Below, one piece after another: positions 556 through 8,500 of a stretch of DNA of 64,000 bases. A program made the translations under genes and the position numbers. Numbering within the stretch: position 1 is the stretch's first letter; each line of letters begins with the position of its first letter. Source of the stretch: Rebecca billardiae RCC1528 (Eukaryota; Protista; Haptophyta). Location of the stretch: positions 2,666,001 through 2,730,000 of the forward strand of contig OZ251224.1 in the NCBI GenBank assembly GCA_965240325.2, given 5' to 3'. The notes under the pieces were generated by a model. The model worked only from the letters and a program-made list of their open reading frames with translations. It was not told the origin of the DNA and did not search any database.

Positions 556-2935
556 TCATGCATTCCCTAAGATCTTCTTGATGATCTTGACGAGCGAGTC
601 GACGCCGGTCAAGTAGCCGTCCTCGTCTGTGCCCTGCTTCCACGCGGCGCGGTGCGTCAGCTTGCGGCTGTCGGCGACGCGGTGTGAGTGGGCGAAGTCG
701 ATCATCTTCACCTCGAGCGCCGCGGGGCTCGTGATCGAGATCAGGTCCTCCGCGCTGCCGCCTTGCTTGATGAGCTTGGCGTGCGCGTCGTGGTCGTACA
801 CGATCAGAATCGACGAGCGCACAAACGCGTGCTTGTGGAAGAAGGTCGAGCGCTCGAGCGCGCTGCGCATGTGCTCGAGCTTGATGAGCACCGCCTTGAG
901 CAGCACGGGCGACGCCTGGAAGAACGTCTCCATCGTCTTTACGACCTGCGCCTCGTCCTTGAGCGCGCGGAAGTTCACGTCGATCGGCTGCCGCTTCTTG
1001 CCCTTGTCCTTTGAGATCATCGCCGCGTCGATCCGGAAGCCGAGGGTGGAGGTGGAGGTGAGCGTGTCGCGGTAGCGCAGGTAGCGCACCTTCGTCACGC
1101 CCCCGGCCGCCCGCTCCTCGGCCTTCGCCTCGTTCTTGTCGATCGCGTCCTGCGCGCGCGCGGGCGTGCGTGGCACAGGGCGGGAGTGCACGGCGCGGGT
1201 GAGAGCGCGCTGCGCCGCGCGCCGCCTGCGCACGGCCGCGGCCGCAGCGCACCATCTTCTTGAGGAGGTCCGGGCGCGGCGTCTTGTCGCTCAGCTCGGC
1301 CTCCAGCACCGTGCGCGTGCCCATCTTGATATCCATCACGCACGGCGACGACATCCCGGCGGTGAGGTCCTGCACGAGCACGCTGACCGAGTGCTCGAGG
1401 TCGATGTCGTGCTCGCTCCGCGTCTCGGAGCGGCCGGTGAGCGCCTGCGCGCGCGCGTTCGCGTCGCTGTCCGCGTCCTGCAGGCCGTAGAGGATGGGCG
1501 CGTACGAGGAGACGTCCGAGGCGGAGAAGGCCTTGTAGAACTCGTACTCCTCCTGCGACGTCTTCTTCACCAGCGTCGTCTGCCCCGCGCGGCGCAGCGT
1601 GCCCTCGTGCCCCGCCACCTGCATGAGCGGCGTGATCGCGTCCTGAATGTCCTGGTCAGTGACCTGCACGCGCACGTTAGGCTGAGCGGCGAGCGGCTGC
1701 TTGTCGTTCTTGGTGAGCCACGCGTTGAGCCGGAGCTGGTTGAGCGTCATGCGCTGGTCGCTCGCCTTCGTCAGCATCGCGCTGATCAGCGCCTTGAGCC
1801 CGTCGCTCACCTTGGCCTTGCTGTCCTTTGGCTGCTCCACCACTGGCGGACATCTCTGCGCGGCGCGCGGCGCGCAGTGCGGCGGCGGGTCGCGCCAGGC
1901 GCGGGCGCGCCGCGGGCGGGAGAGGCCGTGAGCGCGCGCCAGGCGTGCGCCGGGCCGCGCGGGCTTGGCGAGGGCCGGCCGTCGCGCGCCGCCGCGCGCC
2001 GCCGCGCACCGCGATCTTCTCCATGATCAGCATCGGCGTGGCCTCGTTGAAGGGCGCGCTCGCGTACACCCACAAGTGCAGGGTCACTCCGAGCGCCCAC
2101 ATGTCACACATGCGCCCGTCGAACTTGCCCGACTGCGCGGTGTCGCACATCTCGGGCGCGAAGAAGGCCGGGGTGCCCGCCGTCTTCTGCGAGTCCGCAG
2201 ACGCCTCGGCGAAGATGGCCGTCCCGAAGTCAGCGATCTTCAGCACGCCATCGCGCCTGCGCGCGGCGCGCGGCGCGCAGCCGAGCGGAGCGCACGCGCA
2301 CGTGTGAGCGCGGAGCGGCGCGCATGACCGTGGCGCCGTGAGCGGCTGGCGGGCGGCAGGCGGGCGGCGCGCGCCGAGGGCGCGCACTTGGAGACGAGCA
2401 GGTTGTCCGGCTTGATGTCGCGATGCACGATCCCGTTCATGTGCAGGTACTCGAGGCCGAGCACGAGGTGCCGCATGTGCGACCAGATCGCCGCCTCCTT
2501 GAGCGGTATTGGCGTGCCGTCGCGGCCGAGGGCCTGGGAGGAGCCGCCGTCGACGAACTCGAGGACGATGAAGACCTCGTCTGCGCTCGGGTCGTCGATC
2601 ACCTCGTGCATCCCCACGCAGTTCGGGTGGCGGATCTTCTTCATGAGCGCAATCTCCGCCTTCACCGTGTCGAGCGCCGAGCCAAACTTGCCCTGCCGCT
2701 GCCGCTTGAGCGCGGACTTTTTGAGCATCTTGATGGCGACCTTCTGGCCCTTCGCCGTCGCCAGGTACACCTCGCCGAACGACCCCTTCCCCAGCTGCTT
2801 CGTCACCTGGTACTCGTTGACGCTCTTCACCCACACGCCCTGCTTGATGAGCTGCGCCTTGTTCGACAGCCGCGGCTCGGGCATGCTCGCCGTCGCCTGA
2901 CGGCCTTGCTCGCTGGCGGAGTGAAAGTTCCCCAT
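556..2935 (-). CDS. CAMKK-like Ser/Thr kinase fused to a C-terminal inositol polyphosphate kinase (IPK) domain, 4 exons
   Basis: Exons 2935-2388, 2256-2010, 1855-1253 and 1149-556 join in frame (1992 nt) via GT-AG introns. Kinase motifs GKGSFG, VAIK, HRDIKPDN, DFG, GTPAFFAPE. IPK motifs PCVMDIKMG, STSTLGFRI, SSILIVYD, MIDFAH, DGYLTGVDSL. Confidence 0.9.
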
Positions 2936-3345
2936 GGTTTGCTGCTGGCTGGATGCTGCCCGCGCGCACCCGTTGCCCATGCACTCTCCGCCGAGCCGGA
3001 GGAACAAGCCGTCCCCGGGCAACCGGGCTTGCAGGGGGGGGGGTCGCCGGCGCCGTCAGGCAGGCGCGCTTGAGCGCCAAAATACATATTTGAGTGGGGC
3101 GGAGGTAGCGGAGGCGGAAAAGCAAGTCTGAGTTTGACGACGTTTCGGCCCTTCGGCTTGGTTTCGGCAAAACGACTTCTGTGCAAGTCAGCAACGTCAG
3201 CATGGCTGCGTCGGCAATCCCCTTCACACGACATGCACGACATGCAGTTCTCTCATTCTTTATAGTGCGGCGGTGCGTTGACACGGCATTCGTTCGTTCA
3301 CACGGCTGAACATTCACACGGCATGCCTGAACGCGGGCGGAGCGC

Positions 3346-5346
3346 TCAGGCAGGGCCAGCACGCGCGTACCGCGCGAACCAGCGGCGTGGCGCCTCGTGG
3401 ACTTCAAAGAAGCCGCGCCAGGCGGCACGCCTGGCCGTCGAGGGCGCGATGAGCGGGTCGAGCCACAGCCGCACGTGCTCGCTGCGTAGGAAGCGGCGCA
3501 GCGCGTCGCGTCCGGCGTCCGTCTCCATTGCGGCCGCGTCCGAGAAGGCGGCGCAGAACGCCTTGGCGCGCGGGTTGGCGGTGATCGTGCTCGCCGAGAA
3601 GTTGGCGACCTCCATCCCCTCCAGCGTCCGGCCGCGACTGAGCGCGACGTACCCCTGCCCCTCGGCGAAGACACCGCGCAAGTCCACCTTCACGCGGTCG
3701 AGTGTCGCGCCCTGCGCCTTGTGCACCGTGAGCGCCCACGCGAGCTTGAGCGGGAGCTGCACGCGCACGCACTTGCCCCTAAGGTACACGTCCTTCTCGA
3801 AGCGCTCAGGCACGATCGTCTTGGTGCGCCCGTTTGCGAAGACCACCTGCGGGCAGAGCGGCCCGCGCGGCTCGCGAGCCGGAGCGGCAGCGTCCGCGCG
3901 CGGCCGTTTCCGTGCGGGCGACGCGCCCCCGGCGGCGCGCGCGCCCTCCTCCTCCTCCGGCGGCTCGACGAACGCGCGCACCACGCCGCGACTGCCGTTC
4001 ACTAGCCGCGCGGCCGGGGGCACGCCGTCGCCCACGTCGAGATTCTTGACGAGCATCACCTGCGCTCCGACGGCGAGCTCGAGCTCAGGCGGCACGCGGC
4101 ACAGGCCGGGCTTGGAGAAGAAGTCGTCGCGGCGCAGCGCGTCGCGCACCCACTCGGGGGCCGAGCCGGCCGGCTCGACGCTGTCCACCGCGACGAAGCG
4201 GTGGCGCGGGCCGCCAAGCCTCAGCAGCTCCGCAGCGTTGAGCTCGTCGACCCGTGCGTTGGTCGCGTGCAGCACGGTAGGCTTCACGCCGTCGGCGGAC
4301 TCGCCGAGCGGGCGGGCGAGCGTGCGCGAGAAGAGCGTGTCGGCCTCGCCACCGGGGGCCACCTCGCCCTGCCGCACCGCCTCGAGGCAGCGCACAAGCT
4401 GCTCGTCGGCCTGGCGGAACACGCGCTTCAGCTCGACGCACGCAAACGACGCCTCGCGGAAGCACGCGCTCTCGAAGGCGAGCCCGCCGAGCTCAGCGAC
4501 GCCGATGGGCACGTTGCCGTGGACGCGCTGCGCGCCGTGGGGCGGGTCGCCCGCGTCGAGCGAGACCCGCCTCTCCGGCACCGGCGGCAGCTGCAGCATG
4601 TCCCCGCACAAGACCAGCTGCAACCCACCGAACGGCGCGTCCGAGCCTCGGAGCGCGCGCACCGAGTGATCGATCCAATCGAGCAGCTCGGCGGAGAGCA
4701 TCGAGACCTCGTCGAGGACGAGGGTGTGCAGCCGGCGCCACGCGGCCTTGGGCGCGCGGCTCCACATCTTCTCCATGTCGCGCGCGCACACGGGCACACC
4801 GCAGCCCGCGAGTGAGTGCAGCGTCTGGCCCGAAACGCTGATGGCGGCCACACCGGTCGGCGCGGTCGCGGCGTACTCGATCTGCCGCGCGCGGAGCTCA
4901 CGCAGGGCGAGCTCGAGCGCGAACGACTTGCCCGTGCCCGCGACGCCCTGCAGGAGCACGTTCTCCCCCTGGAGCACGAGCTCGACGAAGCGCCGCTGCT
5001 GCGCGTCCAGTGTCGGCGGCAGGTCGGGGCGCGCCGAGCGCGCGCGCGGCGACGCCGGCGCTGCTGGCCCGGCCGCGTCAGCGGGCTTGTGCGCGAAGGC
5101 GCTAAAGTCGACGAGGTCGGCCGTGGGCTTCGCCTCGGGCGAGTGCGTCGCAGCCGCGCGATGGCCGCTTGCCGGCGCGTGGCCCGCCAGCCACGCGCTC
5201 GCCTCGGCAGCGTCAGGGAAGGACTTGTGCAGCGCGCCAGCGAAGCCATTGACCTGGGCGGAGGCGTCGTCCCACGTGGTGAATACGCCGGTCTGCCGCC
5301 CGACCGCGACCGCATACCAGCGTGGCCCCTTCTTCCCCTTGGGCAT
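3346..5346 (-). CDS. PIF1: Pif1-family 5'-3' DNA helicase with an N-terminal RNase H1 hybrid-binding (caulimovirus viroplasmin-like) domain
   Basis: Single exon. Motifs GVAGTGKS, TAPTGVAA, LDEVSML, PFGGLQLVLCGDMLQLPPV, VFRQ, GAQVMLVKN, QLPLKLAWALTVHKAQGATL, GQGYVALSR. N-terminus WYAVAVGRQTGVFTTWDDASAQVNGFAGALHKSF. Confidence 0.92.
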   Translation of the reverse strand: MPKGKKGPRWYAVAVGRQTGVFTTWDDASAQVNGFAGALHKSFPDAAEASAWLAGHAPASGHRAAATHSPEAKPTADLVDFSAFAHKPADAAGPAAPASPRARSARPDLPPTLDAQQRRFVELVLQGENVLLQGVAGTGKSFALELALRELRARQIEYAATAPTGVAAISVSGQTLHSLAGCGVPVCARDMEKMWSRAPKAAWRRLHTLVLDEVSMLSAELLDWIDHSVRALRGSDAPFGGLQLVLCGDMLQLPPVPERRVSLDAGDPPHGAQRVHGNVPIGVAELGGLAFESACFREASFACVELKRVFRQADEQLVRCLEAVRQGEVAPGGEADTLFSRTLARPLGESADGVKPTVLHATNARVDELNAAELLRLGGPRHRFVAVDSVEPAGSAPEWVRDALRRDDFFSKPGLCRVPPELELAVGAQVMLVKNLDVGDGVPPAARLVNGSRGVVRAFVEPPEEEEGARAAGGASPARKRPRADAAAPAREPRGPLCPQVVFANGRTKTIVPERFEKDVYLRGKCVRVQLPLKLAWALTVHKAQGATLDRVKVDLRGVFAEGQGYVALSRGRTLEGMEVANFSASTITANPRAKAFCAAFSDAAAMETDAGRDALRRFLRSEHVRLWLDPLIAPSTARRAAWRGFFEVHEAPRRWFARYARAGPA

Positions 5347-5588
5347 GGCGGTCCTCACCACGTTGGACACGCGTGGGCCGCCGCCATCATTGCGGTGTCC
5401 GGACCGGCCGACCGCGGTCCGCGCGGGCGGGCCCGCGCGGGGCCGCCGATCCTGGTCAAGTTGGAGTCCGGGTGCCTAGCGGGGACGCCATTTCTCTCGA
5501 TCGGCTGCTCGCCGAAAGGGCGGCGGCGCCTGCTGCACGCTCACGGCGGCGTTGCGACGCGCGGTCTCCGCGCGAGAGGCGCTGCGCG

Positions 5589-8500
5589 ATGAGCTCTAGC
5601 GCGAGGAGGAACTCGCACCCGCCGAATGCGGCGGGACCTAGCGGCGCCACGGCGCGGCCCGTCGCGGTGCAGAAGTCGGGCTCCAGCGCTTCGTTGCGCT
5701 CACAGTCGTCGAGCGCGCCGACGCACCACGTGGCGGCGATTCAGAACAACCCGAGGGTGCGTCGCCCGGCGCGCCCGGGAGCACGGTCCGCGTACGCACC
5801 ATAGCACCCGCCTCACGCCGCGTGCCCTCGCGCGATCGCGCGCTGCCCGCGCGCACGCGCGCGCCGGGTGCGGTCGCGTGCGCACGCAGCCTTCCATCTT
5901 CTCCGTCATCTCTGGGGACGAGTATGAGAGCTGGTACGAGATGGCGACGGACTTCACCACGCCGGCGAGCTCGGCGTCGTCGTTCGCGCCCTCGCTCGAC
6001 CCCTCCTCCGCCGAGGCGAGGGCGCTCAACGAGGCGAGCCTCGCCGAGTTCGGATCGTACTTGAAGACTGTCGGTGAGCCCTACAGCCAGTTTGCCGCCA
6101 ACAGGCGCGAGCCGGTGCCCGAGCAGGCGGGCAAGGCGCGCGAGGGCGAGCCGGCCGGCGGCGCGGTGCGGCAGACGATCGCGCCGGTCACGGCACAGCC
6201 CGTCAGCCTGGAGGAGGTCCCCGAGGTACGCGCAGGCGCAGCCGCGCGCTGCGCGCGCGCGCGTGCTGCGCGCTGCGAGCGCAGCCCTCACCCCTCGCGC
6301 TGCCGCGCCGCGCGCGCGCGCGCGCAGGTGCTGTTCGACGAGAACTTCCGGCTGGAGGACCCGGAGACGTTCGCGTTCTTCTCGCCCGAGGGCACGCCCG
6401 CCTCGACGATGGTGCTGCAGGAGCGGCTCACGCACTACCTCGACCTCGTCGAGGTGAACCTGCTCCATGCAGTTTCGACCCGCTCGGAGGACTTCTATAC
6501 TGCGCTCGGCTCGTGGCAGGAGCTCACGGAGGAGGTGAAGCGCGGGTGCGAGCAGATCGACCGGCTGCGCGCGCACGTGGGCGCGATCGACCAGCGCCTC
6601 GCGCGCACCGCGCTCCGCCTCCCCTTCCTCGGCCGGAAGCGCTCCAACCAGCTCCGCCTGCATAAGAAGTTGTCGCTCCTCGCGACCATCCGAAAGGCGC
6701 AACCGACCATCCAGGCGCTACTGCTGGCGGAGGACTTCGTCGGCGCGCTCGAGCTGATCAGCTCGACGCAGGCGGTGCTGCGCGACGAGCTCGCGGGCGT
6801 GCGCTGCTTCATGCACCTCGACGAGCAGCTCGCCGAGACCGCGGCGATGCTCTCGCGGCTCATGACGCAGGTGCGCTCGCCGCGCGCTGAGCCGGCGCGC
6901 GCCGCGCGCGGCCGGGGCAGTTGGTTGTGTCTGTCCGCCTGTGCCCGAGGCAGTTGGTTGTGTCTGTCTGTGCTCTCGCCCTCGCCCTCACAGCCGCGCT
7001 GCCGACGCACGCGCGCGAGGGCACGCGTGCGCGCGCGGGCCTGGCGCGCCGCCCTCGCTCACGCCCGCGCCGCGCGCGCCGCCCCGACACGGCGCAGGAG
7101 TTCATGCGCACCATGCTGCCACGTCTTGTGACAGACGTCGATGGCGCCGACGGCGGCGGCGCCGACTCCGGCGGCGGCGCCGCGCCCGCGCGCGCGGCGG
7201 GCACGGACGCGGCGGGCAAGCCGCTCTCGCTCGACGCGCTCGGCGCGCGGATCACGCCGCTGCTGATCGGGCTCGTCCGCCAGCGCGTCGCCGCCGAGTG
7301 CCTCAGCGGCTACTTCGCCAAGCTGCAGGCTGAGCTGAAGGGTCTGGTCAAATTCTGCGTGAGCGCGGGGCTTTCGGAGCAGCGGTCGATCTCCAAGGCG
7401 GAGAGTGGCGGCGGCGGCGGCGGCGCGGACGGCGCGGCGCGGCCGACGGAGCTCTCCGCCGCGGCGGTGGGCGCGGCGCGCGCGCTGACGGACGAGGCGG
7501 ACGCCTCCGGCGCGGCGGGCACCATCGCCGACCAGCTCAGCGCGCTCAGCACCGAGCAGTTCATCGCCGTGCTCGGCGGCGTCGAGGGCGCGCTGATTGC
7601 TGAGCTCGAGCGCGCCGCGGTCGCGTGTGATGCACTCAAGGTGATCGTCGAGGGGCGGCGCAAGCTGCGCGGCGCGGCGGAGGCGCGGGCGCGCGGCGCG
7701 GGCGCGGCGCGCGCGAAGGAGAACGGCGACGTGCCCGCCGACGCCGCCGACGCCGACGCGGAGGCTGCGCCGCCAGCGGCCGCGGCCAACGGCGGCAGCG
7801 GCGCCGAGCGCGCGCCGGCCGCCGCCGCCGCGGCCGACGCAAGCGCGGCGGCTGCGCAGGATGCGAGCGACGGCGAGCTGGACACCGCGCTGCTCGCGAG
7901 CGCGACGCGGGAGTTCGGCGCGGCGTGCGAGACGGCGGCCGAGCGCTTCGCCAAGCTCCTCGGCGCGCGCGTCGACGTGCACGTGCGCGCGGCGCTCGGC
8001 GACTTTGTGTCGACGCACCGCGCGGCGCTGCGCTTTGCGACGACGGTCGAGCGACTGGGCGGCGAGCCGTGCGCCTCGCTGCGGAGCACGCTCGCGGCGC
8101 AGGCGCGCGCGTTCGCGGACAACTCGCACGACGCGACGAAGCAGAAGCTGCAGTCGACGCTCGACTGCGAGCGCTGGGCGCAGGCCGAGGTGCACCCGCG
8201 CTTCCAGGCCATCGCCGACGCGATCGTCGAGACGTCCACCGCCGCTGACGAGGCCGCAGCACTCACGCTCGGCGAGCGTGCCGACTCTGCGTCTGGCAAG
8301 CCCGCGCCCGCCATCGTGGTCGACGGCTCGCCGTTCCGCACGGTGGGCTCGGCGCTGCTCCTGGTCGAGCTGCTCGGCCACTACGTCCAGCTCGCGCGCC
8401 TCTTCCCCGCCATCGCCATCCACCTGCTGCCGCAGCTTGTCGACGCGCTCGCGCTTTTCAACTCGCGCTCGTGCACGCTCGTCCTCGGAGCGCAGGCGAT

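Follow-up and report, generated by a model that had tools for sequence, protein, structure and literature searches.

An RNase H1-type hybrid-binding domain joined to a Pif1 helicase core in a haptophyte alga

The gene and its genomic setting

The window, i.e. the whole stretch of 64,000 nucleotides from Rebecca billardiae RCC1528 that was analysed, contains a single-exon coding sequence (CDS) at 3346..5346 on the minus strand that comprises 666 codons and a TGA stop at 3346-3348. The CDS is defined by the list of open reading frames (ORFs), Pfam matches and GC3, and encodes an RNase H1-type hybrid-binding domain (HBD) fused to a Pif1 helicase. The surrounding ORF extends over 3346..5370 on the same strand, with the first in-frame ATG at 5346 resulting in a protein of 666 aa plus stop, i.e. 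ORF list and first ATG yield exactly the span (3346-5346) that a sequence-only reading had proposed. Met1 is the sole in-frame Met ahead of the Walker A motif. Thus, any protein that starts at an AUG and contains the whole helicase core includes the HBD, and an HBD-less helicase cannot begin at an internal AUG. A short out-of-frame upstream ORF, read from the genomic DNA sequence, is located at 5355..5390 on the minus strand (11 codons plus stop) and ends 8 nt before the main ATG.

GC3 is 0.91 across the whole CDS and stays between 0.86 and 0.98 in each 50-codon block, HBD and linker included; therefore, a single reading frame appears to be coding over the entire ORF. This periodicity throughout the ORF, together with the strong family matches, rules out an artefactual ORF of a GC-rich genome. 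A near-identical protein, P0001, is called on two independent Logan genomic contigs (L017 and L018), and an orthologue, P0002, has an identical layout with 48% identity over the full length. None of these contigs could be taken as transcript evidence, since L017 and L018 are pieces of genome on which the neighbours lie on either strand, and the JGI contig encoding P0002 (L019) has no poly(A) tail and carries opposite-strand ORFs downstream.

The flanking genes, encoding Vps54, a protein kinase and an inositol polyphosphate kinase, are ordinary eukaryotic ones, and the GC3 of the CDS fits the genomic contig around it, which has roughly 70% GC. In a whole-genome scan with PF01693 the HBD of the fusion, its site scoring 70.6 bits, is the only one detected in the 72-Mb genome. 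The genome's RNase H genes all lie at other loci and no HBD was found in them; one of them carries a SAP domain instead. A second Pif1 paralogue (L001) is present and has no HBD. What is new here is this distribution, with the genome's only detected HBD on a Pif1 helicase and RNase H genes without one.

Domain architecture of the fusion protein

The RNase H1-type HBD comprises residues 10-53 (5188..5319, minus strand), as defined by PF01693, by matches to 1qhk and 3bsu, and by the AF2 model. PF01693 (Cauli_VI / RNase H1 N-terminal domain) matches residues 10-52 over profile positions 2-44 of 44 with E 4.4e-18 and 65.7 bits (cut-off 21), and among solved structures the N-domain of RNase H1 from yeast (1qhk, E 5e-9) and the HBD of the human enzyme (3bsu, E 1.4e-7) are matched too, in agreement with the RNase H1 N-terminal/viroplasmin similarity that had been recognized at the N-terminus. 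AF2 predicts, with pLDDT >90, a strand-strand-helix-strand-helix topology (E10-15, E20-22, H25-32, E39-43, H46-55). With the HBD alone (residues 1-60) as query only its own sequence was retrieved, the domain being too short, at 44 residues, for any match to become significant in a database of 5.8 billion.

In the alignment with the human HBD the contact residues Y29, W43 and K59 are retained as Y11, W25 and K41, and two of the five contact positions are changed, F58 to His40 and K60 to Ser42. Simultaneous mutation of the W43/K59/K60 triad abolishes binding by the human HBD, and members of the HBD family bind dsRNA as well. The W43/K59/K60 triple alanine mutant is a mutant construct used beside the wild type (PMC8677849). 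The F58 to His and K60 to Ser changes in the algal domain may thus alter its affinity for hybrids.

The HBD is followed by a P/A-rich flexible linker (residues 54-112; 5011..5187, minus strand), identified by its composition and AF2 pLDDT. About 55 residues are predicted to be disordered, with pLDDT <50 over residues 61-109 and 10-residue block means of 31-38, so that the P/A linker described earlier between N-terminal domain and helicase is confirmed. The linker has a GC3 of 0.86 and aligns poorly with that of P0002, which is of similar length.

The Pif1 SF1B helicase core extends over residues 113-591 (3574..5010, minus strand), as derived from PF05970, PF13604, PF21530 and an alignment with ScPif1. 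PF05970 (PIF1) matches residues 121-258 (E 3.7e-27, 95.8 bits; cut-off 25.9) and PF21530 (Pif1 2B domain) residues 420-457 (30.5 bits; cut-off 23.9), and PF13604 is also matched in the core. The 666-aa protein hence contains both PF01693 and PF05970, the pair of families by which the sequence-only reading had suggested to recognize the fusion. The helicase body matches ScPif1 (8xak/5o6b) with E about 1e-62 and human PIF1 as well, and a Foldseek search with the AF2 model identified human PIF1 (6hpt, E 7.6e-40, TM 0.87 by target). The sequence matches of both HBD and helicase are much stronger than chance would give. On the minus strand, the codons of the Walker A motif occupy 4924-4947 and those of Walker B 4699-4719. 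The Pif1 signature motif (4624-4686) lies between motifs II and III, and motifs III, V and VI are encoded at 4579-4608, 3979-4005 and 3628-3660, respectively. A residue-by-residue comparison with ScPif1 shows intact ATPase/helicase motifs, from the GxGKS of Walker A and the DE of Walker B to motifs III-VI, and an intact Pif1 signature, and in an alignment of 64 proteins the Walker residues K140 and D212/E213 fall into invariant or near-invariant columns. As all motifs, the signature and the 2B domain are found in an uninterrupted ORF, the core is indeed complete in one exon, as had been claimed. An RNase H catalytic domain (PF00075) was not found by Pfam in the 666-aa protein. A Helitron Rep/Hel transposase was considered and rejected, as Pfam detected no HUH Rep nuclease domain, the match to Helraiser has E 1e-18 as compared to 1e-62 for cellular Pif1, and the flanking genes are ordinary cellular ones.

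Just past the Pfam match of the 2B domain (420-457) lies a low-complexity insert (residues ~461-497; 3856..3966, minus strand) with pLDDT <50 at residues 475-493 in the AF2 model. It contains a basic RKRPR motif (3898-3912), which may be regarded as a candidate nuclear localisation signal. The protein ends in an ordered helical C-terminal tail (residues 592-666; 3349..3573, minus strand), as seen from AF2 and the P0002 alignment, with helices at residues 592-605, 609-620, 638-648 and 651-660. The pLDDT means of its 10-residue blocks are mostly >90 (84-97), with 59 at residues 661-666. The tail is common to P0002, which aligns through to the end, and has conserved W/P positions in the family consensus. 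Altogether, the predicted structure of the 666-aa protein has a mean pLDDT of 86.6; HBD and helicase are modelled with confidence, and the linker between them as disordered.

Like ScPif1 and human PIF1 (5o6b, 8xak, 6hpt), with which it has 30-34% identity, the algal protein contains the full core with Walker A/B, the signature and an SH3-like 2B domain. In contrast to the yeast and human proteins, however, a folded, tethered HBD takes the place of an N-terminal domain that is long, disordered and not assigned to a known family, the low-complexity insert after the 2B match and the ordered helical tail are additional elements, and there is neither a mitochondrial presequence nor an alternative start codon. 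The order of modules, i.e. an N-terminal domain of the HBD family, a flexible linker and then an enzyme, is that of eukaryotic RNase H1 (3bsu, 1qhk), and action on hybrids is predicted here, too; but the enzyme module is a helicase instead of a nuclease, and the HBD deviates from the human one at F58 and K60.

Recurrence and phylogeny of the fusion

The combination of HBD and Pif1 occurs in 14 of the 119 other relatives listed, the carriers among these being metagenome proteins, a basidiomycete, an amoebozoan and a heterolobosean. The HBD is N-terminal in 13 of the 14 and C-terminal in the heterolobosean Acrasis kona, which thus differs from the algal protein. Companion domains in the fused relatives, i.e. 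G-patch, BRCT, GRF zinc finger, RNase H domain and uracil-DNA glycosylase (UDG), all stem from nucleic-acid or repair proteins. Database models with PF01693 and PF05970 come from Planoprotostelium, Acrasis and Tricholomella, and a preprint (Andis et al. 2018, bioRxiv 10.1101/163188), which cites a bioinformatic survey as its ref. 14, mentions 'RNase H1-like RNA binding' accessory domains in PIF1 helicases from amoebae. The algal protein shares the domain combination with these models and with the amoebal helicases, but Planoprotostelium, Acrasis and Tricholomella belong to other eukaryotic supergroups, and the algal protein and their helicase cores do not group together in a single clade.

The fusion is also present in 2 of 80 giant-virus loci, the IMG/VR MAGs L024 and L027. 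Their HBD-Pif1 and HBD-Pif1-UDG proteins likewise have, within one ORF, an N-terminal HBD and directly after it a Pif1 core, but with a very short linker; they are encoded by AT-rich genomes (36-43% GC), and the helicases are located in a clade separate from that of the 666-aa algal protein in an unrooted tree. One of the two bears a C-terminal UDG, a layout not shared by the algal protein.

With the same architecture in distant eukaryotes and giant-virus genomes, and with amoebal cases mentioned as early as 2018, the fusion is not a one-off; other genomes have it, too, and it had been noticed before. The suggested tie to an extremely GC-rich genome does not hold either: as the carriers include viruses, on contigs of 36% and 43% GC, the link is unsupported, and an adaptation to high GC is rejected. 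The statement that no characterised example is known stands, as the literature searched on Pif1 in combination with HBD and RNase H1 gave general R-loop reviews only and no biochemical study of an HBD-Pif1 protein was found.

An AU test rejects one clade of HBD-bearing cores (delta lnL 760, p 1e-82) and thereby a single origin for all HBD-Pif1 proteins. Thus, the domain was gained or lost repeatedly, with the count of gains and losses being inflated if some of the tree rows without an HBD are truncated gene calls. Recurrence and AU result together imply that selection has repeatedly joined HBD and Pif1 or kept them together. Apart from P0002, the closest relatives are helicases of roughly 510-640 aa, one model having 737 aa, that group in one clade, and the two inspected contigs of this clade look viral, with dense family-less small ORFs, a poxvirus-type PARP_regulatory match and ankyrin repeats. 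The top HBD + PIF1 cluster of the Atlas is 82% viral.

Putative targeting of RNA:DNA hybrids

Pif1 helicases are implicated in R-loop removal, and in yeast hybrids are found partly via the disordered N-terminal domain. RNA-DNA hybrid forks boost unwinding by ScPif1 >7-fold, with the N-terminal domain contributing (PMC6628001). An HBD that steers the helicase to RNA:DNA hybrids is plausible, being a reasonable assumption that fits the published biochemistry of ScPif1. We think it likely that the locus harbors a real nuclear gene for an active-looking Pif1-family 5'-3' DNA helicase, the N-terminal HBD of which, carried on a disordered tether of ~55 residues, would dock on hybrids and aid RNA unwinding. 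The HBD would bind the RNA:DNA duplex portion of an R-loop or another hybrid, presumably the substrate in vivo, and this docking may increase the local concentration of the helicase motor, which could then load on neighbouring single-stranded DNA and peel the RNA away. Hybrid recognition would finally be coupled to unwinding, and not to RNA degradation as in RNase H1. More tentatively, we speculate that the sensor for RNA:DNA hybrids may have passed from nuclease to helicase in the lineage of this alga and that the repeated gains or losses of the HBD on Pif1 in eukaryotic supergroups and giant viruses, with one C-terminal placement among them, might be a 'Rosetta-stone' sign of an ancient core job of Pif1 helicases in hybrid removal, a possibility we regard as somewhat doubtful.

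A Pif1 protein with a folded and well-understood HBD would constitute a clean model to ask if hybrid tethering suffices to direct unwinding, and the recurrence of the fusion among distantly related eukaryotes and in giant viruses lends evolutionary support to a functional link between Pif1 and hybrids. If the proposed mechanism is true, HBD-Pif1 proteins are compact natural R-loop-directed helicases that may be studied or used as tools; what makes them valuable is their breadth and their accessibility to experiments, and they do not represent a novel type of system.

Yeast Pif1 generates flaps at Okazaki fragments and displaces telomerase. In line with these established roles, the HBD might target short hybrids, i.e. 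the RNA primers of Okazaki fragments or the telomerase-RNA/telomere hybrid, instead of co-transcriptional R-loops. BRCT, GRF zinc finger and UDG as companion domains point to replication/repair over transcription, and the HBD-less paralogue L001 would permit specialisation; nevertheless, we consider short hybrids an unlikely target, as telomerase is absent from the giant viruses with the fusion and the sequence offers nothing to tell hybrid types apart. It appears more improbable still that the N-terminal domain has lost its role in hybrid targeting and functions in dsRNA binding, protein interaction or autoregulation, comparable to the ScPif1 N-terminal domain, which modulates DNA binding. 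The domain scores 65.7 bits to its family model, keeps the Tyr, the Trp and the first Lys, and was repeatedly kept on or added to Pif1 in distant lineages, which argues for a canonical nucleic-acid function, although the His and Ser at the positions of F58 and K60, the presence of G or S at the K60 position in most Pif1-fused HBDs and the tighter ssDNA binding of ScPif1 once its N-terminal domain is removed (PMC6628001) would be compatible with such a loss.

Finally, the protein might be a domesticated or remnant giant-virus helicase outside the host genome-maintenance set, which we regard as very improbable. The two viral-looking contigs in the nearest clade after P0002, the predominantly viral Atlas cluster and the giant-virus MAGs that carry the fusion would fit such an origin, but L024 and L027 belong to a different clade, in a tree that, being unrooted, does not reveal the direction of transfer. 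Moreover, the gene lies among those for Vps54, a kinase and an inositol polyphosphate kinase, and its GC3 of 0.91 fits a contig of roughly 70% GC.

Reading frame and gene context

The sequence-only reading had placed a Pif1 helicase fused to an RNase H1-type RNA:DNA hybrid-binding domain (HBD) at window positions 3346-5346, and these coordinates were reproduced: an open reading frame spans 3346-5370 on the minus strand, its first in-frame ATG lies at 5346 and, ending with the TGA at 3346-3348, it encodes 666 residues. It was taken as a single continuous ORF, with no need to assemble exons into a spliced model, and both domains indeed reside in it, PF01693 at residues 10-52 (Pfam E 4.4e-18, 65.7 bits vs a cut-off of 21, profile positions 2-44 of 44) and PIF1 (PF05970) at residues 121-258 (E 3.7e-27), followed by a Pfam match to the Pif1 2B domain (PF21530) at residues 420-457. 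Many spurious long ORFs occur across all frames of the window, owing to its GC content of ~72%. Third-position GC of the HBD-Pif1 ORF is 0.91 overall and 0.86-0.98 per 50-codon block, HBD and P/A-rich linker included; among the codon positions, GC2 ranks lowest in all blocks, and GC3 ranks highest with the exception of one block. As this pattern holds throughout, the whole ORF behaves as a coding sequence in one frame.

Met1 is the only in-frame methionine ahead of Walker A (residues 134-141), the next one being Met191, which rules out that an active helicase lacking the HBD is produced from an internal AUG. No further ATG is present in the 43 open codons upstream of the start. On a Logan contig the gene is flanked upstream, at a distance of ~530 nt, by a divergent Vps54-like gene (Vps54_N domain; window 5626-7131, plus strand) and downstream, ~370 nt away, by a protein-kinase gene on the same strand (window 1677-3022, minus strand), leaving little space for additional exons. 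The kinase gene appears to be split by introns. An out-of-frame upstream ORF of 11 codons with two consecutive ATGs (window 5355-5390, minus strand) stops 8 nt ahead of the HBD-Pif1 ATG and, should it be part of the 5' UTR, may serve in translational control.

Helicase core, HBD and a possible mechanism

In a sequence search of solved structures the head of the protein resembles the N-domain of yeast RNase H1 (1qhk, E 5e-9) and the human HBD (3bsu, E 1.4e-7), and the body resembles human PIF1 and ScPif1 (8xak, 5o6b; E about 1e-62); Helraiser, a Helitron helicase, reaches just E 1e-18. Matches in NCBIfam were partial only, and the families hit were an HBD-bearing RNase H and the helicases RecD2, RecD and TraA. 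Aligned with ScPif1, the protein has intact Walker A and Walker B (DE) motifs, an intact Pif1 signature motif and intact motifs III, IV, V and VI; its catalytic positions show no or almost no variation among 64 aligned relatives. An AlphaFold2 model from a 64-sequence alignment (mean pLDDT 86.6, pTM 0.80) predicts a strand-strand-helix-strand-helix HBD (residues 10-55, pLDDT above 90), an unstructured linker (residues 61-109, pLDDT 31-38), a confidently predicted helicase (residues about 113-591) and a C-terminal tail of four helices (residues 592-660, block-mean pLDDT mostly above 90). The insert after the 2B-domain match (residues 475-493) contains RKRPR and is predicted to be disordered. 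The top Foldseek match of the model is human PIF1 (6hpt, E 7.6e-40, TM 0.87 by target), and the next ranks are taken by Pif1 structures from Candida albicans, S. cerevisiae and bacteria.

By alignment, Y11, W25 and K41 are the retained equivalents of Y29, W43 and K59 of the human HBD; F58 is replaced by His40 and K60 by Ser42. Alanine substitution of W43, K59 and K60 together abolishes hybrid binding of the human HBD. This triple mutant has been used as a construct alongside the wild type (PMC8677849). As G or S also occupies the K60 position in most other Pif1-fused HBDs, loss of this second lysine is not peculiar to the protein studied here.

RNA-DNA hybrid forks raise ScPif1 activity more than 7-fold, with a contribution of the ScPif1 N-terminal domain (Nickens et al. 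2019, PMC6628001), and a hybrid-binding N-terminus on a Pif1 helicase is thus functionally sensible. We lean towards a mechanism in which the HBD would tether the Pif1 motor to RNA:DNA hybrids, the most likely of those considered; the candidate hybrids are R-loops, primers or telomerase RNA.

Spread and origins of the fusion

The protein belongs to an HBD-Pif1 architecture that is already known. The sequence-only reading knew of no characterised example, and in the literature searched we found neither a paper joining PIF1 with Cauli_VI nor a description of an HBD-Pif1 enzyme; the architecture as such, however, was noticed earlier, as Andis et al. (2018, bioRxiv 10.1101/163188) mention "RNase H1-like RNA binding" accessory domains for amoebal PIF1 helicases. 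Our analysis adds that the two domains are joined repeatedly, in eukaryotes as well as in giant viruses. In a word-index protein search PF01693 and PF05970 occur together in 15 of the 120 listed relatives, the window protein counted. According to Pfam, the plain HBD-Pif1 layout is found in P0002, a 48%-identical orthologue on a JGI contig of 70% GC, and in P0079 from the basidiomycete Tricholomella, and other database proteins are arranged as HBD-G-patch-Pif1 (P0019), HBD-G-patch-Pif1-BRCT (P0067), HBD-Pif1-BRCT (P0115) and HBD-Pif1-GRF zinc finger (P0037). P0028 (938 aa, ENA metagenome) carries HBD and RVT_3 RNase H upstream of Pif1, i.e. a complete RNase H1-like unit, and is thus predicted to combine a nuclease and a helicase, both acting on hybrids, in a single polypeptide. 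The HBD is N-terminal and partial in P0093 from the amoebozoan Planoprotostelium and C-terminal in P0091 from Acrasis kona. The ESM Atlas cluster closest to the query has the HBD plus PIF1 combination in its name, and viral members (Nucleocytoviricota) make up 82% of it. Of the 80 best-matching Pif1 loci in IMG/VR, two encode both domains in single ORFs: L024, an HBD-Pif1 from a giant-virus MAG (43% GC), and L027, from a giant-virus contig (36% GC), where one 845-aa frame (2947-5481, plus strand) reads HBD-Pif1-uracil-DNA glycosylase. The GC content of these viral carriers does not bear out the suggestion that the fusion is explained by a GC-rich genome.

Trees were calculated from the helicase core only, with the HBD columns excluded, by quick, unrooted IQ-TREE searches, 25 near-duplicate rows being left out of the second tree. 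The window protein groups with P0002 (SH-aLRT 99), and the viral pair L024 and L027 groups with other viral helicases, distant from it. A single clade of all 16 HBD-bearing cores was rejected by the AU test (delta lnL 760, p 1.3e-82). The trees need 12-13 changes of the HBD label, 6-8 of them forced by well-supported branches, gains not being separable from losses as some HBD-less rows are possibly truncated gene calls. That the HBD is C-terminal in Acrasis independently indicates that the fusion arose more than once. Next closest to the window protein, behind P0002, is a clade of helicases of roughly 510-640 aa (one model 737 aa). Two contigs inspected from this clade look viral, with dense family-less ORFs, a poxvirus-type PARP_regulatory match and ankyrin repeats, and virus-host exchange is therefore possible somewhere in its history; the window gene itself is host-like in composition and has host genes on either side.

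HBD, RNase H and PIF1 loci in the source genome

New here is that the sole HBD detected in the genome sits on Pif1. A six-frame scan of the whole 72-Mb assembly (41 contigs) found no PF01693 outside the HBD-Pif1 gene, and a profile from 14 Pif1-linked HBDs recovered the window site alone, even at E up to 1. All RNase H-domain loci found in the genome lack an HBD, i.e. an RNase H that carries a long extension at its N-terminus (L012), a near-identical pair of 260-aa frames (L013:1447-2226 and L014:1180-1959) in which RVT_3/RNase_H precedes a C-terminal SAP DNA-binding motif, located at C1:2308236-2308640 (plus strand) and C1:2410027-2410431 (minus strand) of the assembly G000, a further RNase H (L015) and an ORF resembling a retroelement, with an RNase H domain (L016).

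A second genuine Pif1 paralogue without HBD (L001, 618-aa frame) is found on the same contig at a distance of 375 kb and is placed in a different part of the Pif1 family tree. Two near-identical giant frames of 3519 and 3640 aa (L002 and L003; G000 C23:67122-67679, plus strand, and C33:780942-781499, minus strand) contain a PIF1-like helicase domain (99.7 bits) and could represent a Helitron-like element, an insertion of viral origin or a single giant gene with many domains. A 357-aa frame present in four copies (G000 C5:2212530, C14:276281, C5:3546279 and C5:3547852; loci L009 and L010) matches PIF1 partially and identically each time (35.1 bits) and is probably a repeated element with a helicase fragment.
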